Assembly (NCBI GenBank): GCA_047495785.1
Contig: JBLDXI010000054.1
Span: forward strand, 4,216,001-4,280,000
DNA from: Lepidodermella squamata
Lineage: Eukaryota > Animalia > Gastrotricha
Direction of reading: 5' to 3'
DNA length: 64,000 bases
Below, piece after piece: positions 34,735 through 63,115 of this stretch. The notes below the pieces were generated by a model. It did not search any database and was not told the origin of the DNA. It saw nothing but the letters and a program-made list of their open reading frames with translations. The stretch's first letter is position 1. Every line of letters starts with the position of its first letter. The translations under genes were made by a program, and so were the position numbers.

Positions 34735-36329
34735 CTTCAGTCGTCTAGGTTCGGCAACATCTTTTAGCTTTCATGAAATCTCTGCTGACAAAATCATCAA
34801 GGCTGCGGAAAAACTTACCTCAAAAACAACCACAGGTTACGACGGCGTCGCTGAACGGGCCCTGAGAGCTGCAGTGGTGTCGAAAAACTATTGCGAATTT
34901 TTGTCCCAATTCTTCAACTTGATTCTACGTAACAACGAAATTCCTGAAAAATGGCCCACTAGCGTGGTCACTCCAATCCACAAATCTGGAGACCGATCTG
35001 ACCCTTCAAACTACCGACCGATATCAATCCTATCGTCTGCACTAAAGTTATTCGAAAGATGCATAAGCGACCAAATTAAAGAGCACCTGTATGCACACAA
35101 CATTCTTAGTAAATCGCAGTTTGGCTTCCGAAAGCACCACTCAACATCAACGTGCCTACTAGCAATTGCCGAAGACTGGCTCGACGCGTTGAAAGACGGC
35201 AATTATGTCGCAGCAGTCTCTCTCGACCTCAGCAAGGCTTTCGACACATTACACCATGATGGCATCGCCGCATCTTTGAAAGCAGCGGGGTTTGACGAAA
35301 AGGCGATTGAGCTGATCAATTTTTACATCACGCGCCGCCAACAAATCGTAAAAATTGGTAACTGTCTGAAAGACTGCCTGTGAACGTAGGCGTACTTCAA
35401 GGCAGTGTCCTCGGACCATTGCTTTTCTCTCTTTATGTTAATGACCTTTTCTCGATCTGTGATAGCGATAATCTAAGAACTGTCCAATTTGCCGATGACA
35501 CAACAATTTATGCATTCGGATCCACAGCTGCGGAGGCCCGAAACCTACTACAAGATAGGCTAGTCAAGTTCTGCTCGTGGTTTAGCAACAACTCGCTCAA
35601 ATAATTAAACCCAGACAAATCCCAGTTTATGGTCTTATCCCCTGTCGAAATTCCCTCCATCAGCCTGCAAATCGCCAATGCAACACTAACCGCCGTCTCT
35701 TCAATCGAATTATTAAGATTCATCTTGGACCATAGGCTCACCATGGATGAACAAGCGGAAAAAGTGAAAACAAAGTTCGATCTGGCACCTACGCCCTCCG
35801 CATCGCTAGCCAGAATCGCCTACCATCCGCACAGAATAAGGCAATTAGGGCTCTGCTTAACAAACCGTACTCGTTCGACGCCACCGCTCTCCTCAAACAG
35901 TTAGGTTGGCTACCAATCGACGAGAAACGCCTAATCCACGAAATGACTCTAGTTTGGAAATGTTTGCACTCTCAAGCACCTGCTCTCATCAAAAACTTGA
36001 TCAACAAACCATCGTCCGATCACAAAACCAGGCTTAGCAGCTCTGATGGCGTCGAAATTCCTCGACTAGCTAACCATCTCAGCTTTCGATTTCGTGCTGC
36101 TAGCAAGTGGAATGACTTACCGCCATCGATAAGATCTTCCGAAAACCCGAAGATCCTCAGAGACGAACTCCTGAAAGTACTGCTGAAAGCAGAATACGTG
36201 GACGATTTCGTCTACACAAAGAAGAGGTAACTCGCCACCTTACCTCGACGCGCCCACCTGCGTCCGTTAGATGGAAGACCGCCTTAGTGCGAATCCAACG
36301 CTATTATACATACATACATACATACATAC
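34735..36329 (+). mobile_element. 5'-truncated, decayed non-LTR retrotransposon (CR1/L2-like RT) with (TACA)n 3' tail
   Basis: RT motifs NYRPISILS, QFGFR, DLSKAFD, QGSVLGPLLFSLYVND, FADD, WNDLP; frameshift near 35380 and in-frame stop at 35602; tail 36307-36329; 5' boundary approximate. Confidence 0.92.
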
Positions 36330-38805: not shown

Positions 38806-41800
38806 ATGAGCTCCTACCGGTCTGCCACGCTGGGCAGTCAAGGTATTCAGATGGGTACTTTGCGCACCGACGATTACAGGTTTGTTGCGTGTAAATTCTG
38901 CCGCAAAATATTGCATGATAATTGGATTTTTAGGCGTGCTCTTACGCCCCGCGTCGACGTTGACGCAGATGCCGAGACGAGAGCTGCTGAGTATCGCAAT
39001 AACGGGAACGAAGGAAACTTAGATGGTCTCAGGCAGGAGCTTATCATGGATGAACATAGAGTCCCGGTGGACGAGCTTTATGCCAGATACAGCACCGATC
39101 AAGTCAGCGGTTTATCATCTGAGCAAGCAAGGGTGTATCTCAACCGTGACGGGCTCAACGAGTTGACTCCTCCCCCAGAAATTCCTGAAGTTCTTAAATT
39201 TATGAAACAGCTTTTTGGAGGGTTTCAAATTGTGTTATGGGTGGGATCTATCGTTTGCCTTGCTGCGTATATTCTTCAGGTATTGTCAGGCATGATTGAT
39301 AAATAGATTAATTTATAATGTCTTCAAAATTTAAAGGTGACAAATTACGATCATCCGCCTCCAGACAATTTCTACATGTTCATTGTTCTTGCTGCAGTAG
39401 CTACCGTAACTGGAGTTTTCTCGTATTTTCAGGTTCGCATTCATTTACTTGTGACTAGAGGCTTTCGACAACAATACTATCACGCTTTCATTTTATAGGA
39501 ATGGAGATCCTCCAAAATTTTGAACTCCTTCCGTAGCTATATTCCTCAATTCACGGTTATCATTCGTGACGGAAAACGTGAGCAAATCAGAGTTGAAGAG
39601 CTTGTCGTGGGTGACTTGGTAGAGATAAAAGCTGGAGATCGAATTCCCGCGGATATTCGACTTATTACTGCCGACCAGTTGAAAGTAGACAATTCGTCTC
39701 TAACTGGAGAAGCTGATCCGCAGTCGCGATCGCCTGATTACACAAATGAGAACCCGCTTGAAACCAAGAACCTGATTTTCATGTCCACGTACTGCGTCGA
39801 GGGAAGTTGCCGAGGCATTGTCATTCGCACCGGAGATCGAACGGTTTTCGGAAGGATCGCGAATCTTGCTTCGGGAGTAGATACACGTTCTACGAAAATC
39901 GCAAAAGAGATTCGTTATTTCATTGTCATCGTAACGGGTAAGTGTTGTTAATATCACTTGTTTATTCGTTTAATATCAAGTTCAATCTTCCAGTCTTTTC
40001 ATTCCTTCTTGGCTGCACTTGGTTTCTGATTGCATTTTTGTTGCAATATTTCTGGTGGGATGCGTTCATGTACCTCATCGGTTTGATGGTGGCTCATATT
40101 CCGCAAGGAATTCTGACGACACTGACAGTAAGTTCCTGATCTTTAACTTTTTTTACAGACTTACAACTTTTGTTAATAAGGTATGCCTGTCGCTAACTGC
40201 GAAACGTATGGCACGTCGAAATTGTCTGGTCAAAAACCTTCAGGCTGTTGAGACATTGGGTTCAGTTTCGTGCATTTTGACCGATAAGTCAGGCACACTA
40301 ACTCAGAACAGTTTGGCCGTTCAACATTTGTGGTTCGATTTGAAAACTCATGACGTCGAGCTGAATGAACAAGAAACTGCGCCTTATGCAAACACTCCGA
40401 CTTATCTTGGCTTGCTGCGTGCGGCATGTCTTTGCAATAACGCCGAATTCAAACCTCATCAAGCCAGTGTGCCGGCTATGGTAAAATTACACTTTTACAA
40501 ATGAAGCTAAGTAAATATATTTGTAAATGTTTTTTAGCGTCGAGAAGTTATTGGGAAAGGAGCCGAAGGAGCGATTTTGCGTTATACTGAGCTAATTTTA
40601 GGCGACAGCGTTGCTGAGCGTGAGAGATTCCCGAAAGTTGCAGAGGTAGCATTCACGTCATCTTCAAGATACCAACTGTCGATTCACGAGCTGCGCACTG
40701 AGGGATCGCGCTATTTACTGGTCATGAAAGGCGCCCCGGAGAAAGTTCTAGACAAGTGTCAAACGATGCTCCTATCAGACGAGCGCAATCAACCGATAAC
40801 AGTTCAAATAACTGACCGAGATCGCCGTGCCGTTTATGATGCCTGTGAGGAATTGGGTAGTCAGAGTGAGCAGATATTGGCGTTCGCCGATCTTGACTTG
40901 CCTCCGGCGAAATTTCCGCCTGGATTCAATTTTAAAGTTCCATCAAGTGATCCGCCATCAGGAGCTAACTTTCCCGAAGCCGGCTATCGCTTTTTAGGAC
41001 TTGTTTCGATGATTGACCCACCGAGAGCAACCGTCCCCGATGCCGTCAGGAAATGTCGTGACGCTGGAATACGCGTGATTATGATCACTGGGGACCATCC
41101 TGCCACCGCCAAGGCCTTGGCTAGGAAAGTCAATATCATCTCGGAGAGCAGCGAAACAGTCGAAGAAATCGCAACGCGGCGTGGCATTCCTGTGGCTAAC
41201 GTCAATGCCGACGAGGCCAAGGCTTGCGTTATTCAGGGGCATGAGTTGCGCGAAATGGGTCAGCTGCTGGACGAATTCCTGTTGCGACACGAAGAAGTGA
41301 TTTTCGCCCGCACTTCGCCGTCGCAGAAAATTCTGATAACCAGTTCTTGCCAGCGTATTGGTCATGTTGTGGCAATCACGGGCGATGGTGTTAACGATGC
41401 TGTTGCGCTTGCGAAAGCGGACATTGGCATTTCAATGGGAATCACTGGCTGCGATATTAGCAAACAAGTTGCAGATGTCGTCCTCTTGGACGACAATTTC
41501 GCATCGATCGTTGCCGGTGTTGAAGAGGGTCGTCTTATCTACGACAACTTGAAAAAGACAGTCGCATATTCTATCACTTCGAACATCCCTGAGATGGTGC
41601 CTTTCATAATGTGGATCGTTGCTGATATGCCTATTTTCATCAGTACCCTGACTATTTTGTGTATTGATTTGGGAACTGACTTGCTCCCAGCTGTTTCCTT
41701 CGTTTACGAAAAGTCAGAAGCTGATTTAATGAAACGCAAGCCGCGCAATCCAAAGACTGACAAACTGATCAACGAACGAATGTTGGCATTCTCGTATTGT

Positions 41801-42431
41801 CAAATGGGTTTCATGCAGACGGTTGCTGCGTTTTTTGCAGCGTTTGTTGTCATGACCGAATTCGGGTTTTGGCCAACACGTCTGATTGGCCTTCGTCGGG
41901 AATGGGACTCGCCTGGCATTAACGACGTCGAAGACTCTTATGGTCAAGAATGGGTTAGTTATTCTGCCTCCACTATTCCCTCTTTTTGATTGGTGTTATT
42001 TTTGCTGTAGTCGATTTCCCAACGAGCAAAACTCAAGTTTTACGCCTTTTCAGCCTATTTCGTAGCGATAGTAGTTTGCCAATGGGGTAACCTGCTTGCC
42101 TGTAAAACTCGCCGCCAATCGTTGTTCCGCCACGGCATCAAATGGTAGGCACTTTTGATTGGCTAAACAGCGTATATTTATTTCAATAACTAGGAACTAT
42201 GTAATGCTGTTCGCGCTCTGCTTCGAAACCATCCTAGCCGTTTTCTTGTGCTATGTTCCGGGAATGCAGACTGCTTTCCAGCTGATGCCGATTCGTTTCG
42301 AATGGTGGCTGCCTGCGCTTCCCTACGCCGCTTTTATCCTGATATTTGACGAGGGACGGAAGTTTTTCCTGCGACGGCAAGACCCCGACGCCATCGGACA
42401 TGGCTTTGTTTACAGAGAAACGTACTACTAG
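38806..42431 (+). CDS. P-type IIC ATPase, Na+/K+-ATPase alpha-like divergent paralog (multi-exon)
   Basis: [66 protein letters not shown]-terminal ETYY. Confidence 0.95.
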
Positions 42432-43312
42432 GTGGTCAAGAGCCAACCGGCCTACAATCCGTGCCTATTGCCTGTTACAAAATTTCCTTTATAAAACCTT
42501 GTTGCTATCTCTGGTTTTAGTCCATTTATTCGATTTTATTTGATCGCATATCGCTAGTAATATTGCTAAAAACACAATTTTTATCAACTCAGCTGATAAT
42601 GTTAATTTGAGTCCTACGAGCGCACGAGCTATCTATACATACTTCGACTTTACTTGCTGGTCGGCTGAAATTAACATATCCTAAGCTTCCTTTATACACG
42701 TCAGGTTGTGAAATTAACCTTTATCTGGTACTTTCATTCCATTGGAGACGCTGACGGGCGACGATTTTGCATTTTATTCTCGAAGAAATCCAGTTCTTGA
42801 AGCTCGAAGCTCGGCGCTATTCATGTTTTTGGTTGTGTCTTTTTTACATTACACTTTTTACGGAGTTTCTACTCGAAAAAGGCTCTTTGAGCGCCTATTT
42901 TCAATTTTCGAATCGGATGGTTGTGTTTTTGCTTGTGTCATTCTGCTCATCAACATGTTTCCAGGTTTTATGCGTCTGTCACTAGCTTCCTCTTCTTCTA
43001 ATCCAAAACAGTCTATGCCCTACAGAAGAGGAAGATTACTTCAAAATATTATATGCCATATGCAGGAAGTAGCTTCTCTCAATGCTAACGCGTGAGAGCG
43101 CTGCTCCTCTCGTTGAGGTTGTGAAATTTGTTATCGTTTTTTTCTTATGAAAAATTACCGTTGTATTTAAAAAATGTCAAAGACTGCTCTACATCAATTG
43201 CCTGTAAATGCACTTGGGCTTGTTTTATATCAAATGCTATTCGGCATCAATTTATACATTACGTAGGTACATTCAACTAATAAAACTGAATTGCTATATC
43301 TATATACGATTG

Positions 43313-43388
43313 CTACCGTAGTTTTTCCGTAGCACTACGGTAAAACTACGGAAAAACTACGGTCAGTACTACGGTATGACTACGGTAA
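43313..43388. repeat. Left terminal array: 2 inverted (CCGTAG) plus 5 direct CTACGG units
   Basis: CTACGG at 43335, 43346, 43357, 43369, 43380; CCGTAG at 43316 and 43327. Confidence 0.92.
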
Positions 43389-44277
43389 AATAATTTTTAG
43401 GAAAAAAAGATTAAATCGCTTTGTAAAATGAAGGAAAACATTAGTTGTGTTTGATAAAATAGATTTGTTATCATGACCAACCATCAAAATCCATTTAGCA
43501 ATAATCTGCATGGGCTAAAAGCAATCAGAGACATAGATGAGGGCTTGCCCAGAGCCATCGCGGACATCGCGTTATAAAAGTGCCAAAGCTGCTCATATAT
43601 GCAAAGAAGTCCTCGAAACACTTCCTGGCTAGGGGAGATACGTTGCTCTATCATATGTTCACAGTGCCAACACGGAGTCTCTATTTCTCGGCCTCGATAA
43701 TCGCACGCAAAACCGCCTGTAAACCTGGGCATTTTAACCGTTTTCGACGAATCACACCTGCTTACATAACGCAAGTGAGGCTTGTAACTTTTCAGTGGGA
43801 TAAAAGAGGGTGTATTCTGTCAAGTTTTTGAGGTTCCAGTCAGCGTTCCTAATTCCTCGTCTTCGAATCTCGCTGCGCAACTACGGAACAGCGAGCCAGT
43901 AGTTAAGGAGCGAAACTCGGAAATCTCAATTTAAACTGCCGCGTGGAATAATTTTTAAACATCAAAATATATATTCCGATGAATAAATAAAACAGCTATG
44001 TGGTGAATTTTCAAATTTAAATTTTTTATTAAACAACCTTCAACATCTGCATACCCGCGCAACGCCAAGCTAGTGGTTGCCGGCGGCGAGCTCGGCACCC
44101 ACTACTTCGTTTTTTACTTTCAACTTGAAAACTACTGTTAATACTGTTGCTATAACGATCCTTCTTTGAGTCGATTGGTGCTTGTTTGTTTGGCTAGCAA
44201 TCATTCAAGCACCTAGCAAGCATCTTTAGGTGTTGGTCATAGAGAGTATTGTAAATGTCATTTCTAGGTATTATCTA

Positions 44278-45503
44278 ATGATGATTCGATCCTCGAATCT
44301 TATTTGTGTTCTGTCGGCCCCGACCACCTCCCTGCCGGCCAGGTTCTGGCGTGCAGACCCTGCAATCGAATTGAGAGCGCTCGTTGAGAGCTTCCGACTC
44401 CAATTCATGCCTCTCGAAAATAATGTGCAGCTATATTATGAAGTAAGTTAGGCATTTCTTGTACTAAAAGCATGCTAACTCGTGTTAAACCACAGCTCAA
44501 CGAAGAAACCGATATATTGCTGCATTCTAACGACTGTTTGAATATGTTCATCGAATATCACTCGAGTAGTAATCCGAAGAGAATAGCTCATTTGAAGCTA
44601 CTACCAGCAGCTTTGCCACCAGCAGCTGCTGCTCTGCAAAGTGCGCTTAATGCGTTAATGCCCAACAACAACAGCTCGGCATCGCCGTCTTCTTTCAACG
44701 CCCTGCAATCTCTACTACAATCTCCAGCTGCTGCTAGCGGGATTTTGCAGAACACTCCAGCTTTGCAAAGCTTGTTTCTGCAAAGTTCTGTGAACCCAAA
44801 AACAGCTACATCGGCAGCTTCGAGGCCGGCTGTAACCGCTACTCCTAGGGCTACGAAGCGCTCTGCTGCTGGAGCGTCTAAAGGCGAAGGCGTCTCGAAT
44901 AAAACGAGACGGGTAGCTTTCGAAGATGATTCGTCTCCGGGCTCTGACTCTGATGATGATGAGGATGGCGAAAGAAGTGGTAGGTAAGCTGCCCTACTTC
45001 ATTCAATAGTTAATAGTTAACAATGGGATTTCTATTAAGGAGTGCTCGATCTGCGGTCTATCGAAGCGGGGAGGATGGAAGTAGAGGAGACCGAGAGCGG
45101 AGGGATCGAGACCGAAGCAGCAGCATCAGCGGGGGAAACGCTCACGACCGCAGGAGCAGAAGATCTGACGACTTCTGGAGCGGTGAAACCTCTTGGAGAT
45201 CCCCTTGCGCGTAAGTATATTATTCAGTTTAATCCTGTTAATGTTTCACTTGCTTCTTTCTGTTTGTATAGCCTCCTCATAGCAAATACTGAGCAGGCGC
45301 GAGTAGCACCCCGTCCTTTCGAGCCCCGCGAAATCGATGTCCTTCAGCAAATAGCCCAACAATTATTAGCCGACAAAAAGGAGCTAACTGAAGAGACTGT
45401 GCTAGATGCTATGTCAAAGTTACGCATCAGCCTCGCTGAATCCTTCAGTGGACGTAAGCTCGGGAGTCTGGTAAGGAAAATGAAGGAAATCGGGAAGAAA
45501 TGA
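44278..45503 (+). CDS. Element gene A: PB1-like N-terminus, Ala/Ser- and RS/RD-rich middle, helical Myb/HTH-like C-terminus (351 aa, 4 exons)
   Basis: Exons 44278-44442, 44496-44983, 45040-45210, 45272-45503 join via GT-AG introns into one open frame (1056 nt); domain calls are pattern-level only. Confidence 0.7.
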
Positions 45504-45564
45504 TTTGAAGCAAGGTTTAGCTCATGCAATTGAGGTGATTTTTTGTTATTTAGATATTGTTGAA

Positions 45565-47980
45565 ATGCAAATCGTGAGGATCAGACATCAGTCAGCTGTC
45601 AAGCTTGCTGAAATAAAAGGGAGCGCTTTTCAGTGTCTCGTTGACGCGACAAAGCGTTTATTTGGCCCGGGCAAATATTCGTTCTTTTGGGGTAATTATT
45701 GTGAATTTTTGTTAAGTATAAGTATATGGAAAATCTCAGATTTAGGCATTGATAAGATCAATCTGGATGAAGAGCAGCTTGATTTAGCTCTCAAGTGTGA
45801 ATCTTCATTAACAATTGATGCCGTCAAGTGTGATGGTGCCCCTAGTGGCGAGAAGACGGCGAAGGCGAAAACTGAGAGTGCTGAATCGTCTCCTCCCAAG
45901 TCGAATTCACGCGAGCCTGATCGCCAGCCGCGCATTCAGAAGCGATTCTATGGTCGATTTCAGAAGGAGCATAGAAGTGGAAAGTCTAGACATCCTGGCA
46001 TAGGACGGCCGTGCCCGAAATGCGGGAAGAAGCTGAGTGATCGAACTGCTTTGGTTCGCCACTTACGAGGCAAGCGGGCTTGTCCAGTCGGTTTGGGCAA
46101 GGATTCGATTTCATCTCTTTGTGAAGAATCCCAAAGGTAATGAGACTTTTAGGCTCTATGGTACAGGAATATTGTGCTATGCTTTTCAGACTCGCTCAGC
46201 AATTAAAATCAAACAAAAAGCCCGAGGAATTCTCCAAGATAGAACCCTCCACGTCCACTGAGTGTAAAGCTATTCCTGCTCAAAACGTCGTCACTGTTAC
46301 TGTTAACAACGGGACATTGGCTGGAAACGTGTCAGAACCAAAGAAGAACGAAGAATCAAGTGTCGAAGAGATCGATTACTATTTCGCCCAGTTCGAGAAA
46401 TCATTTGATAATCCTATCTTTGGCTCCAGCAACCGAGCCCCGAGTACTATAAAAAAACTCATATCGTCGGCCCGGCAGGTCATTTCGATTTGCGGTTACC
46501 GTAATCTGGCTGAATTGTACAGCAAAGAGGGCTTCAACAAACTGGAGAAGCCTTTCATTCGAGCCGTTTCGTTCAGCTCGAAGAAAGCCATGTGCCAAGG
46601 CCTTCTAGAGTTTGTGGAATTCCTCGAGTTTTTCGATGAATTATCAGTGGATGAAAGGCGTCGGGTGCTTCTAATCGCGTATTTGAAGAAAGCTTACGCC
46701 TCGTTTTGCCGGGGCGTTGCTGAAGATAACAGCGTTCGTCGAATTCGGCTCTCCGAGAGCATTCGGAACGGAGAATTGCCCTCGTATGCCGAGGTTTGTC
46801 AAGTTGTTAATGCCCTCCAGCAGCAAGTTTCTGGTTTTCTATCGACGCCAAAGTTGAACGCTGAAGACCTTAAGACATTTTTTGCCTGGGTAGCTTTTAC
46901 TCTAGTAAAGCGCTGTGCCATCAGACCTGGCGCCCTTACCCAGATGCTTGTTCAAGAATTTCTAAAGCCTATTCGAGTTGGCGAGGACACGGTACTTATT
47001 CATGTGAAAGGTTAGTTTTTGAAGTTCTCTCAACTATTATGAGCTGACTTTGTCTGTTTCCGTTATGCAGGGCAAAAGGTTTCTACGTACAATGATGGGT
47101 ACGTCAATCTCCCGAAGGCGACATACGACGCCTGTTCGACCTACTGGAAGAAATGGCGGGTTAACAACCGCGACAATGAAAAGCGATTCTTCACCCTTGT
47201 TGTGGCGTCAAAGGTTCGCTGCCTTGAATCCTCGGATCTTGGCAGACTTTGCAATCTGAAATTTCGTGATGTCATTGGCAAGGACTTCACGTTCACTGGA
47301 TTCAGACAATACATGCAGACGATATTTGCGCAAACGTGCACGGATAAATGGGAAAAAAAATGGTTCAACCGTGTAATGCAGCACAGGTGCGTTGATTTCT
47401 GCCCCATTTTTTGCTTATTTAAATGAGTCATTCTAGCGATTCCGTCGGGGACAAATATTACGAGATGGCGATGGCGCCAAAGTTTCATGCCCAGATGGGC
47501 CTTAAAATTGAAAGTGAAATGCTCCTCAGGGAGGCTAACTGGGTGGCTGCGGGCAGCCGAATTGCCGACACAGAGTCGGAGAACGAGCAACCCATCTCCG
47601 ACGATGATGAATCTCAAGCCGCTCTTAATCCGAGCGCCATGCAATCGCCAAAGCGCAGTGCAGGCAGGTCAGTTGCTGGATCGAGGAAGTTGAGCGGCAG
47701 CGCAGTTAGCAGCGACGCTGAATCAACAGAGCTTTCGTCAACGAAGCGGGGTCGCGGTAGTAGGAAGTTGAGCGGCAGCGCAGTTAGCAGCGACGCTGAA
47801 TCAACAGAGCTTTCGTCAACGAAGCCGGGTCGCGGTAGATCCAAGAAGACCATCAAAGCCGAAAAATCGGCACAACAGCCGTTGAAGAAAGACACGAAGA
47901 AAGAACTGCCGTCGAAAGAAGACAAGGCAGTGAAGCGGGGTCGGGGTAGACCCAAAAAATCACTTGCTTTGAAACTCTGA
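45565..47980 (+). CDS. Element gene B: PB1-like, C2HC zinc finger, tyrosine recombinase, AT-hooks (734 aa, 5 exons)
   Basis: Exons 45565-45691, 45740-46136, 46190-47010, 47071-47386, 47437-47980 give a 2205-nt open frame; YR residues CAIRPG (R), VKGQKV (K), FTGFR (R), MQHS (H), DKYY (Y); CPKC-x12-H-x6-C; KRGRGRPKK; AATAAA at 48056. Confidence 0.85.
47684..47838 (+). repeat. Near-perfect in-frame 78-bp tandem duplication in the gene B tail
   Basis: RKLSGSAVSSDAESTELSSTK(R/P)GRG twice; units start at 47684 and 47762. Confidence 0.95.
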
Positions 47981-48188
47981 AGTCTTTGAAGTGACTTGAA
48001 AGCGTATCAAACACTTAGTTCAATTCATATTGAATTTAGTTCAATTTATTTTGAAAATAAAATCGAAATATTTCCAATGCTGTCTTTTATTACCTGGAAA
48101 TCGGATCAATGTTGTTTACCCTCGCAAGACAGTGCCGCGTGAATAGCACATGCAGAAAAAATTGAAGAGGCAGCGATATCAAATTTTG

Positions 48189-48271
48189 CTACGGTAGAAA
48201 AACTACTGCAATTACGACTACGGAAAAACTACGGAAAAACTACGGCAATAACTACGGTAGAACTACGGTAG
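48189..48271. repeat. Right terminal array of direct CTACGG units
   Basis: CTACGG at 48189, 48218, 48229, 48240, 48252, 48263. Confidence 0.92.
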
Positions 48272-50560
48272 AAATTCCCTAAAGAGATGAATTTTTTCGA
48301 AATGTGACTTTAGGTATTTATGCTCCGGAGTCATACTCGAAGATGATGGGAGAGTAACTTGTAATGGTGTTGAACTCGACATGGATGGGAAAGGGGTCAA
48401 TTTGGGAGCACATCTTGCCTATAGGAATTGCATTTGGCGTTTGTGATGACGGTGAATGAAGAAGATCATTGGCGGGTGAAATGGTCGTCGATAACGGCAG
48501 TTGCGGTGAATAGGAATGTTTAAATATGAATATTATAATGTTGTTTTTAGCCATGTGCCCGGTGCATTTTTCTCGCGCGACAGCGTTGAATTATTATTTC
48601 ATACTGTAGTAATAATAATAATATTTAAGGGAATAACGCGCTCTCAGTTTTTCTTAGCCATCGTTATTGTAGATATAGAACGCAGTATATTCAGTGCTGA
48701 GCCGCGCACACCCTACAATATTTTTGTTTGTTGTCTCGTCCTACGATGCCTATCGATCTGCGAGCGGTCCGCCGCTTGTCGTCAAAAAGAAAACCACCGA
48801 TAATAAATACACGCTACGAACGGCAATAGAAAAATAAAAAACGGGCAGAGGCGCACACGCGCATGCACACATACACATACACACATACAAAACAAAAAAC
48901 GCACTTTCCAGCAACGATATCAGTCATAAACATATTGCGTGGGCATAATATTGGGTGACTACGAGATAGCGCCAAGTAATAAAGGAATAGTGTGGCAGTA
49001 GCCGGCAGTACATAACGCATAAAAAAAGGTTGTTTACCCTTTCTGTTTGGCCATCGATCGCAGCGCGCGCATAAATACTGGATATATGGATGCAGCATCG
49101 GTCTAACAACACGGCGCGCTCAGGCTCGCCCTGTACTCCGTGTATTCAGACTATATGCGTGTTTGCACCGAAAAATGTGTGTGCTTTTTGTGTTCTACAG
49201 TCGGTTTGTTGCCCCTACAAACATCGGCGTATAAATCATATTATTATTATTATTCCTAACATTTTATTTCGTCCGCCGTTCGCTCCACCCTGCCTGTATT
49301 TTTCTCCGTCCAATCAAGCTGCATACTTATTACATAAGCATACAACCGAAGCCTTCTCGTCAACAATAAACCAACAACTTTTGGAGCACCAAAATATAAA
49401 TATACACGCGAGCGATTTGCATCATCGCCGGCCTCTACCTAGAGAGCATCCTCGTTCAGCTTGCCGTGGCGTTCCAACCCGCGCCCTTGGTTGGCGCTAG
49501 AGGCACGTTTGTGTTTGCGCAACATGCATTTTAGCCTGTTGCTTTGATGATACTTTGCTTGACTACGTATCGTTTCGGCCGTAATTTTTTTCGAGATTTG
49601 AAACGACGCCAAACGTGAGCTGATGTTGTCTAACGGCCTAATCTGATTCAATGTTACTTCCTCGGTGTTTTTCAACCACTGTCTTTATTCAACGACCATA
49701 GTGTTGGCATATGGATGAATTTATTTTCTGCCTTCGGTCTCATTGAAGCTCGAGGTATTTTCAGCAAGGCTACTTGCCTACATGCTTATGTAGGCTGTTG
49801 CTGAAAATGCCATGGAATGGTCAGTTACTGGACGAGGTTTTCTGAAGGTTTGATGTGTCCTGAATTATAAATTCTGAATTATTTTTCATATAGGCAAATT
49901 CATAGAATTTATTGAATAATTCGCATCTTCCACGCGTCGCACATCGTTAAACTCTCAGCACTATTTCTGGCTGACGACTTCGGCTGTTGGCTTGAAGCTC
50001 GATGATAATTATTAAAACCTAATTTTGCAGTGACATGTAGTCATTTCTGCACCCAACTTTTTGAGTGAATTATTGGATGCAGTTCAAGTGATATTCTTCT
50101 AGTTTGTTATCAGCTGATTTACTAGAAAATATTCCCTCTTCATGTCTTCGAAATTCAACCTGCCGGATCGCTAACCGTGCATTCGTTTAAATTTTTGGGT
50201 ATATATTTTGCCTTTCTCTTAAGGTTTTTGTTCTTGAATAGATTCTTAATGCCAATTAATTTCCATTGAACACTCCAAGACTGAATTATCCCGTCGGCTA
50301 GAGTGAGCTGGACAATCAAAACCAGTTACAGCATCATGTTACTGCGCGTCGCTTTTTTCGACGAGCAATAAAAGCTGACGATTGAAAGTTTCCGCACAAA
50401 ATTGGCGAAATGTAAGTTCTCGATTGATTGCATAGTTTTACGGGAATCCGGGCTTTTTCGCGGTTTCTCGTGTGTTCTATTCGGGGCAGCTATTTGAATT
50501 AACTGCGATATTGATTCCTTTTTCTTCGAACTTTAGATAGCCGCTGCCTTGGCAAGTTGC

Positions 50561-61023: not shown

Positions 61024-63115
61024 TCAACGCGCGACAAGAAGGTCTGTGGCACGCTGCTGGACGGTTGCAACCTGTGGGTTGATGAACGATAAGTATGAGA
61101 TATTGAATTCCAACTTTAACTAACCGTTCGGCCATAAGTCCAAACATCACCTCGAACACGCTTACGGCGAATGCCTACGGAGTATCCGTTGGTTGCAGAC
61201 GCAGAGTCATTACCCATCGAAGAGGAAGTCGAGGATGAGTGTGACTGGAGAACCACAACTTCCAACGCGAACATAAGCTGAGCCTTACCCCAGTCGTTAT
61301 TGATGGTACATTGCAATTTCCAATCGTTGATGTTGTCATATCGAACTTGCACGATTTCTTCAAGGGCTCGTCGCAGTGCAGACATGACGCACTCGCATTG
61401 AGAAACAATCGACCTGTATAATTGGCGCACATTTTTTCGTGAACGACGGAGCATTTTGCTAGTTACTTACTCAGAACCAAGAGAGGGAACGTTGATGCAA
61501 GTAATGTCATGACCTAAAATGTATCGAGATAACAGAGTCATCATATCCTTCTTCTAAATCAACTCACCAACAGCGCCACGAATGACGCGTGGATGGCCCT
61601 GTGAAGCGGACGGAGCGCGCCTGTGCATTGATACTGCCCCGTTCTGAAATATATCCCCATCACCAATAGGGCGCTTGATCTTAGAATGTGGAGTGAAAAA
61701 GTTTCGAATTGACGCAATAAAACGGCGACCAGGTGTAGCCGACGGCGAAGCCACTGCGTTGGCACCTGAAACAGGGTTCCCTGGCACGACTGTGCGCAAA
61801 TTGCTTGACTGCTTCAACTTCGCCGTGTTGAAGTTTGCAGTAGGCGTAGCATTGTTAACCGCTGATGAGCCGACGGTTGGTGGGGTTGAACCTGGTTTGC
61901 CATAAGAACGGTGAGCAGTGGGCGAGGCCAAAATCATCGAATCTACGGACCCGCTACGGCCAGGAGACTTGTCCGAGTTCGGTATCACAATTTGGGTTGT
62001 TGACGGATTCACGATTATCGAATCAATGGATCGCGAAGGCATCAAGGGAGATAGAGATGATCCTTTGGCAGCGGCGTGGCTGATTCGGTCTGTGATAGGT
62101 GTCAGGGTCTTACCAATGTGACCTGTGGTTGCAGGCAGAAAGACATGCGCAGCTTGGTTGGCGCCTGAAGACTTGCAAGCAGCTCGATTTTTAGCAGCGG
62201 GCGCTAGGATAATGATAAATTAAGGTGCATAAAGTGAGTACACAAATTAGAGCCTGCATTTTGCGAATTCGAATATGTACTAAAAAACCTGCTCTATTGT
62301 GGAAAATGGCCTCCATATCACGAACATGAAAAGAGAAATACATGCTACCTGAAAACGCCATTTGGCCAGTCGGCGAGTACTGAGGATGGGCTGTAGGCGG
62401 TGCAACATTTTCCTTGCTAGAAATGCTGTTTTCAGACAACCATCCGCTTGTCGAGTCGTCTTCAACACTGTATTCGCTGTTTTGATCGAAAGACGAGCCA
62501 TGAGGAGCAAGAGGCTTCCGGAAGTTTTCGGCTTGGCGTGGTGAAATGGCATCATTACTTGCAGCGTGGGATATCCCAGTAGGTCCAGCACTGTTCGGGA
62601 ATACGGATTCTTGGAACTCTGGCTCCTGATTAGCGCTATGCTCCAGAGCGCCCATTGACGATGGTACAGTCATCGGTATATGGCGGGTGGTGGATTCACG
62701 CAGACGCCAATTCATACGCGTCCCGTTAGAGCTCAACTTGCGGCGCCACAGTAATAAATATACAGCTGTCACCTCATTATATGGCCATGTTTTGGGATCC
62801 CGGGAAAGAATAGCCAAAAGAGAGTCGTAGGATATTCCGAGCTTTACAACGAGCTGAAAAAAGGGAGACAATGATTTGACATGATTTGCATGTTGTTCAA
62901 TTACTTACCTCAAACATAACTTCCCTATCAGGCATCTTCAGTTTTTCCATGTACCCGCTTTCCCAACGGACTGGGATCATGGATCCTGTATTGGGCTCGG
63001 TCTGGCGAGCAGATTGTTGTGTCTTCGGATACGTGAAAAATGAATTGGCGTTGGATTGGCAGAGCCAAGGATGCACGAGTAATTGTCGGACAGTGATGCG
63101 GCGGCGTGGATCGAC
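61024..63115 (-). CDS. MELK: MELK-like AMPK-related kinase, 3' part (kinase C-terminal end, UBA, KA1); 5' exons lie beyond the window
   Basis: VDPRRRITVRQLLVHPWL, PVRWES, WPYNEVTAVYLLL, KA1 LQCT..DWGKAQLMFALEV..VGIRRKRVRGDVWTY; last exon 61071-61024. Confidence 0.85.

Follow-up and report, generated by a model that had tools for sequence, protein, structure and literature searches.

A two-gene tyrosine recombinase element in the gastrotrich Lepidodermella squamata is a probable new structural variant of Crypton-type elements

Element ends, arrays and insertion site

The window analyzed here, a stretch of 64,000 nucleotides (nt) from the gastrotrich Lepidodermella squamata (NCBI GenBank assembly GCA_047495785.1, contig JBLDXI010000054.1, positions 4,216,001 to 4,280,000), contains a tyrosine recombinase (YR) element of 4,979 base pairs (bp) between a Na/K-ATPase alpha gene on one side and FoxP on the other, the neighbors that a first-pass annotation of this DNA had named. 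The element holds two arrays of CTACGG units and two genes on the + strand, open reading frame 1 (ORF1) and ORF2, the latter encoding the recombinase. It is inserted at CTA, polymorphic in the organism, transcribed and spliced, and it carries an intact recombinase of a conserved family.

The ends were placed at 43303-48281, or at 43300-48278 given a 3-nt ambiguity (CTA), from an empty allele in public contigs of DNA run X1 and of RNA run X2, which belongs to a separate study. At this empty allele 43299 is joined to 48279, skipping 4979 nt, and CTA fits both sides; the short side of the joint measures 255 nt in X1 and 22 nt in X2. CTA is present in two copies around the element (43300..43302 and 48279..48281, both +) and in a single copy at the empty site, and this 3-nt direct repeat is the putative crossover core and target site. 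The first-pass annotation had drawn the boundaries at 43313-48271 (~4.96 kb); the empty site moves them outward and leaves the 9-nt inverted boxes CTACCGTAG/CTACGGTAG subterminal, 10 nt inside each end, which rules these boxes out as terminal inverted repeats. The outermost ends, TATACGA and AAATTCC, are not inverted repeats. TATACGA (43303..43309, +; family consensus WATACGA) sits right behind the CWW core, and with the relatives L101, L003 and L007, which have the same motif in the same place, such left ends are known from four loci; CWW itself stands at all seven ends that were read. The right CTA lies 10 nt past the last TACGG, the spacing also seen in L008 and L009, which represent one family with two different right flanks and have right ends of the form TACGG + 10 nt + CAT.

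The left subterminal array (43313..43388, +) consists of two inverted CCGTAG units followed by five direct CTACGG units, 11-12 bp apart, and the right array (48189..48271, +), read from the sequence, has direct CTACGG units at the same 11-12 bp spacing, oriented as the inner units on the left. These arrays, already described in the first-pass annotation, account for nine of the ten matches to CTACGG-N4..6-CTACGG in the 64-kb window, vs 0 expected from shuffles. The remaining pair (61943-61959, 11-bp spacing) lies outside the element and is probably a chance occurrence. The left array of L101 is near-identical in layout, with the same inverted-then-direct plan, though its recombinase is only 48% identical; end motifs and arrays are conserved while the enzyme has diverged to about 50%. 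A 17-nt array pattern sought in metagenomes gave 87 scattered single matches, which were judged to be chance.

The empty site and the presence of relatives at different sites bear out the mobility claimed in the first-pass annotation, and we regard the locus as very probably a mobile YR element. Contigs of X1 also join the same left end to other flanks, others share the array and then diverge, and coding copies among the X1 contigs are 85-95% alike; the family is therefore multi-copy, as judged from contig sequences rather than from depth. In two further X1 left-end contigs the match begins at 43296, and ATAT may thus precede CTA at other insertion sites as well, which would hint at a broader target preference. 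Two X1 joints (45340-46786 and 45342-46734) skip ~1.4 kb and may come from internally deleted copies; their short sides measure only 28-30 nt. The insertion site is unique AT-rich sequence, non-coding but transcribed, downstream of the Na/K-ATPase stop. RNA contigs span the non-coding sequence on both sides (42430-43299 and 48282-48561) and also run across the empty site. The insertion thus breaks up a transcribed stretch, which is probably a long 3' untranslated region of the Na/K-ATPase-like gene.

The two genes, their relatives and their transcripts

ORF2 (45565..47980, +; 734 amino acids (aa), introns 45692-45739, 46137-46189, 47011-47070 and 47387-47436) encodes in five exons a PB1 domain, a C2HC zinc finger, the tyrosine recombinase and an acidic/basic tail with an AT-hook-like GRGRP. 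The PB1 domain (45565..45828, +) is interrupted by the first intron and was recognized from exons of relatives, of which exon 1 matches positions 4-46 of Pfam PB1 (E 0.0034) and exon 2 positions 47-81 (E 0.00029); both matches are under the gathering score, yet they are complementary and in order, and the window's own exons alone gave no match. The finger (46012..46083, +; Pfam zf-C2H2, E 7e-4) has a leader, RHPG(L/I)GRxCPxC, that is conserved in relatives. The core-binding and catalytic domains (46380..47470, +) were delimited by residue conservation and by the predicted fold of the relative P0006. The tail contains a 78-bp in-frame tandem duplication (47684..47838, +); at the same end of ORF2, L003 (3260-3740) and L007 (4040-4380) are built of tandemly duplicated exon-intron units.

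The catalytic residues are R420 (46923), K451 (47076), T524 in place of His (47295), R527 (47304), H553 (47382) and Y562 (47459). Exon-wise comparison fixed R420, K451, R527, H553 and Y562, which are conserved across the exons of six relatives. All catalytic motifs of the first-pass annotation are present, and its observation that the His of HxxR is replaced holds throughout the family; the comparison places the conserved Lys at K451, in GQK, not at the K of IHVK, and identifies Y562 as the invariant Tyr. Every relative has Thr or Ser at the position of the first His, and its replacement is therefore no sign of decay. Y562 sits nine residues past H553, the spacing found in XerD and lambda Int.

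Sequence searches of Pfam, PHROGs and the PDB with the exons and the relatives returned no recombinase match, and only folding revealed the enzyme. P0006, in which no intron separates the core-binding domain from the second His, was modelled at pLDDT 84, and in agreement with the fold proposed in the first-pass annotation the model matches Cre, XerA, XerD and lambda Int across both domains (Foldseek E 1.6e-5) and aligns with XerH over 271 residues (Z 12.9); an integron integrase and Tn1549 Int were also matched. Its nearest predicted structures are unannotated chordate recombinases, one of them fused to a SET domain (TM 0.61-0.70), followed by viral recombinases. We conclude that ORF2 is an intact recombinase of a conserved family whose member P0006 has a predicted fold of the Cre/XerH type.

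ORF1 (44278..45503, +; 351 aa, introns 44443-44495, 44984-45039 and 45211-45271) has four exons and comprises a conserved N-terminal domain that is PB1-like by pattern only, a low-complexity linker and a C-terminal three-helix helix-turn-helix (HTH) with a weak likeness to Myb and trihelix domains. It is shorter in relatives, which keep the N-terminal domain and the C-terminal 65-aa domain; the latter models as three helices plus one short helix (pLDDT 86), and one member of the ORF1 family has a Pfam Myb match (E 0.049). Seven of the nine differences between ORF1 and its paralogous copies are synonymous.

Relatives of ORF2 exon 3 number 32 (21-59% identical), all unannotated predictions from metagenome or Logan contigs with no named protein among them. 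Word-based homology searches reached nothing past the same family, none of its members was found in JGI metagenome and viral contigs, and Rfam gave no match. DNA is available for eleven loci (the window, L001, L003, L004, L006, L007, L008/9, L097, L099, L100 and L101), which share the order of ORF1 upstream, then a splice acceptor, then ORF2, so that the accessory gene of the first-pass annotation recurs in relatives. A recombinase tree built without known Cryptons orders the family internally into two well-supported subgroups. The distant one (L004, L005; P0018, P0023, P0027, P0030, P0031) is about 23% identical (support 100/99) and carries different domains, with a weak KH-like Pfam match, where PB1 would otherwise precede the finger. 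In L004 the acceptor is nevertheless the same, and an ORF1 whose tail is HTH-like still lies upstream.

All seven introns were found as GT..AG joints in one 3,043-nt RNA contig of run X2 without letter differences, and three also in RNA run X3, which confirms the two co-oriented genes and their spliced products of 351 and 734 aa. The gap from the ORF1 stop to the ORF2 start is 28-85 nt across loci. In the window it holds the poly(A) addition site of an ORF1-only transcript (45529, +), seen as a loose end of 15 A in one X3 contig at a place with no genomic A-run, and, 24 nt further on, an unpaired splice acceptor made of a T-rich tract and TAG (45538..45553, +), 11 nt 5' of the ORF2 ATG and a candidate trans-splice site. 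A TAG 0-16 nt 5' of the ORF2 ATG is present in all eleven loci, and in 10/11 it has a T-rich tract by a strict rule that 4-5% of random places satisfy; some of the eleven loci are close kin. Upstream of ORF1, a conserved motif resembling a promoter, ACCTT(C/G)A with a GC-rich box behind it (44036..44066, +; 242 nt 5' of ORF1), is a candidate promoter on sequence alone. A similar pair lies 108-154 nt before ORF1 in five relatives (motif at L003 267, L007 1135, L100 525, L101 2684 and L004 76). The motif often reads TGACCTTGA, a form that we take to resemble a nuclear-receptor half-site.

These features suggest one promoter giving a two-gene precursor that would be cut at the ORF1 poly(A) site, while spliced-leader trans-splicing, as the likeliest route, would supply the ORF2 mRNA with a fresh 5' end at the acceptor. 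Trans-splicing is proposed because the ORF1 poly(A) site just before an unpaired acceptor is the pattern of an operon, and on balance we lean towards this layout. Weighing against it, the X2 contig runs unspliced through the gap and no spliced-leader read was seen in the RNA contigs. The continuity of the X2 contig would also suit two other routes to ORF2, namely alternative splicing in cis that starts at a non-coding 5' exon common to both genes, or re-initiation of translation on an mRNA with two cistrons, as would the acceptor-like AG found 0-23 nt upstream of ORF1 in five of seven loci. A shared exon would lie in the 0.8 kb upstream of ORF1, where no RNA contig covers 43482-44257, and the operon pattern at the poly(A) site likewise speaks against both routes, so that we give them a real but smaller chance than the trans-spliced operon. 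Two further candidates were rejected. A single fused ORF1-ORF2 protein made by cis-splicing is arithmetically possible, but the RNA contigs show no such joint, ORF1 has its own poly(A) site, and the acceptor-to-ATG distances vary and are not in frame. A +1 frameshift at the ORF1 stop is impossible, as five relatives have the acceptor TAG immediately 5' of the ORF2 ATG and in its frame, where it acts as a stop; any piece joined there is therefore non-coding.

Elsewhere in the window (GC 43.8%), the Na/K-ATPase alpha gene (38806-42430) appears rather diverged around its catalytic loop and could represent a paralogue, and a non-LTR reverse transcriptase fragment (34874-35383; Pfam RVT_1, E 3e-17) has no relation to the element.

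Comparison with Cryptons and other mobile elements

Cryptons, which Goodwin et al. are said to have described in 2003, share with the element a tyrosine recombinase, introns and the lack of a reverse transcriptase, a short direct repeat equal to the target, a clean empty site and the lack of perfect terminal inverted repeats. The element fits the broad Crypton definition in these respects: its recombinase is of the R-(H)-R-H/W-Y type with Thr/Ser for the first His, as judged from the fold of P0006 and residue conservation; only two ORFs lie between the ends, with seven spliced introns and no reverse transcriptase/RNase H; and its target-equal repeat is single at the empty site, with no terminal inverted repeat at the very ends. 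It differs in its 3-nt core and phased subterminal arrays, in the PB1 domain and C2HC finger before an enzyme whose first His is replaced family-wide, and in its upstream PB1-like/HTH partner gene and operon-like layout. Crypton direct repeats are reported as 4-6 bp, and the second genes described encode a C48 peptidase, an HTH protein or a DDE protein. The first-pass annotation had suggested a new Crypton-like system; the element is better described as a new structural variant, since two-gene Cryptons with other second genes have been described (PMC3212892, PMC13465315).

The features of the Crypton groups follow Kojima and Jurka 2011 (PMC3212892). CryptonA has a DUF3504-type recombinase and no terminal repeats; neither the window exons nor six relatives match DUF3504, and the element has a terminal repeat and arrays. 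CryptonF has a C-terminal GCR1_C domain and 6-bp direct repeats, while the last exon of ORF2 gave no Pfam match and the repeat is 3 nt. CryptonS elements have direct repeats of 5-6 bp, mostly TATGG, in stramenopile hosts, in contrast to a CWW core in an animal. CryptonI elements are insect elements with a single YR gene and no terminal repeats, from which two genes, a direct repeat and arrays set the element apart by described features rather than by sequence. CryptonV (Kapitonov and Jurka 2012, Repbase Reports; cited in PMC8869645) and the unannotated animal recombinases with SET domains resemble the element as animal YR DNA elements. Compared by description only, they differ in that the element has no SET domain and its empty site is unique AT-rich sequence, not a microsatellite, although microsatellite targeting is not universal in CryptonV. 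The element appears to work like a Crypton, and it is best described as a new structural variant of Crypton-type elements, set apart from CryptonA, F, S and I by described features.

Starships and DIRS/Ngaro/VIPER elements are likewise eukaryotic elements with a tyrosine recombinase. The resemblance to Starships, fungal elements with a DUF3435 captain first and cargo, is distant and at the level of features only, as the element has no Pfam DUF3435 match and no cargo and is 5 kb long; from DIRS/Ngaro/VIPER it differs by having no reverse transcriptase/RNase H or split repeats. Between the ends there are no genes of a Polinton-like virus or provirus (capsid, packaging ATPase, polymerase). Elements of the lambda Int and Tn916 type combine a core crossover site, phased arm-type repeats and an accessory DNA-binding protein. 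The element parallels all three, arm binding being presumed here, and lambda Int and Tn1549 Int are among its fold matches, but it is eukaryotic, contains introns and has no conjugation or phage genes. PIF/Harbinger elements (Harbinger3_DR; PMC9710019) also have two genes, one of them encoding a Myb-like HTH that the HTH of ORF1 weakly recalls, a short subterminal repeated motif and a 3-nt direct repeat, while the enzyme here is a tyrosine recombinase, not DDE, and the ends are not inverted repeats. In the literature searched, neither PB1 domains nor phased arrays nor an operon layout were described for any YR transposon; elsewhere, PB1 has been reported from MULE-derived genes of plants.

Proposed mechanism and alternative explanations

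The element is probably a DNA transposon that is autonomous, has moved recently and uses the tyrosine recombinase exchange proposed for Cryptons, a model with which clean excision of the active CryptonF-1_cRei is consistent (PMC9977147). The ORF2 protein would bring the two ends together for strand exchange in the 3-nt CWW core. This would free a circle with one core between the two arrays at its junction, predicted to read right array-AAATTCC-CTA-TATACGA-left array, and leave a clean empty site behind; the circle would then integrate at another CWW. We have good confidence in this circle-type exchange at the core, slightly more than in the reading as a whole. The helically phased CTACGG units, at 11-12 bp, may serve as arm-type sites that lie along the same side of the helix and assemble the synaptic complex, bound either by the HTH of ORF1 or by the recombinase's own finger. 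PB1-type head-to-tail contacts may join the ORF1 helper to the recombinase. PIF/Harbinger elements offer a parallel in the Myb-like protein that assists their transposase; the one of Harbinger3_DR binds a 9-bp subterminal motif and the transposase (PMC9710019). By this analogy ORF1 could be an array-binding helper, for and against which the case appears evenly balanced.

Several observations weigh against this reading. Run X1 is probably the sample from which the window was assembled, so a heterozygous insertion is the simplest account of the two alleles; somatic excision may be an alternative, and contigs cannot be phased. The end-to-end junction of a circle was not found in contigs, which drop rare forms, and a core of 3 nt falls short of the 4-6 bp given for Cryptons. 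The fold prediction concerns P0006, which shares 38% identity with the window in exon 3 and 42% in exon 4, rather than the spliced protein of the window, and the model ends before the Tyr. The ORF1 HTH weakly resembles TRF1, LUX, Zeste and GT-1 but also TetR (Z about 5), and the N-terminus of ORF1 has no Pfam PB1 match despite its PB1-like pattern. None of the contrary findings anticipated in the first-pass annotation turned up.

The same mechanism could belong to a lineage already held in Repbase or Dfam, such as CryptonV or an unnamed animal Crypton group, with only the accessory modules added in this host lineage. The chordate recombinases nearest in predicted structure, one SET-fused, would suit such a lineage, as would the existence of CryptonV, described only in Repbase Reports; yet the 32 sequence relatives include no named protein, and CryptonV is described as targeting microsatellites in cnidarians, unlike the site here. 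We consider a catalogued lineage rather doubtful. Equally doubtful is the opposite view, that of a separate, undescribed superfamily of animal YR transposons with core/arm sites like those of integrative elements, an obligatory helper, a PB1 assembly, an operon resolved by spliced leader, and a PB1/HTH module that is exchanged between transposons with unrelated enzymes within the same hosts.

More improbable is a single-strand route in which the left-array hairpin is used like an integron attC site and the element is copied out rather than cut out. The left end is hairpin-capable and folds far better than shuffles in both the window and L101 (z about -6), an integron integrase is among the top fold matches, and Cryptons gain copies despite clean excision (PMC9977147). 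Against this, any inverted pair of binding sites folds likewise, the two strands of the left end do not differ in folding, folding at the right end is weak (z -1.9), and no inverted pair is present in the left ends of L003 and L007. Still less probable is that the element is a shell of PIF/Harbinger type which a DDE transposase mobilizes in trans, with CTA as target-site duplication and the recombinase a passenger or a replacement that does not use the ends. The 3-nt direct repeat, the possibly Myb-like second gene and the subterminal repeats do recall PIF/Harbinger (PMC9710019), but the true ends are not inverted repeats, there is no DDE gene in the element, and in every relative a full set of recombinase catalytic residues goes along with the same ends. 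Domestication as a host gene pair, or descent from an integrated virus, is extremely unlikely: some fold neighbors are viral recombinases, but domestication is refuted by the empty allele, and a virus is argued against by the seven spliceosomal introns, by the lack of capsid, polymerase and packaging genes between the ends and by the absence of relatives from the viral contigs searched.

Crypton movement is still mostly a model, with active copies observed so far in a single alga. The locus provides an intact, transcribed and polymorphic animal element with base-exact ends, an empty site, a core/array consensus and a predicted circle junction, in what is probably a cultured species. With ends, empty site and consensus in hand, the circle model, the role of the arm-like repeats and the need for a helper become directly testable, and the conserved unpaired acceptor offers an independent handle on trans-splicing in the host lineage.

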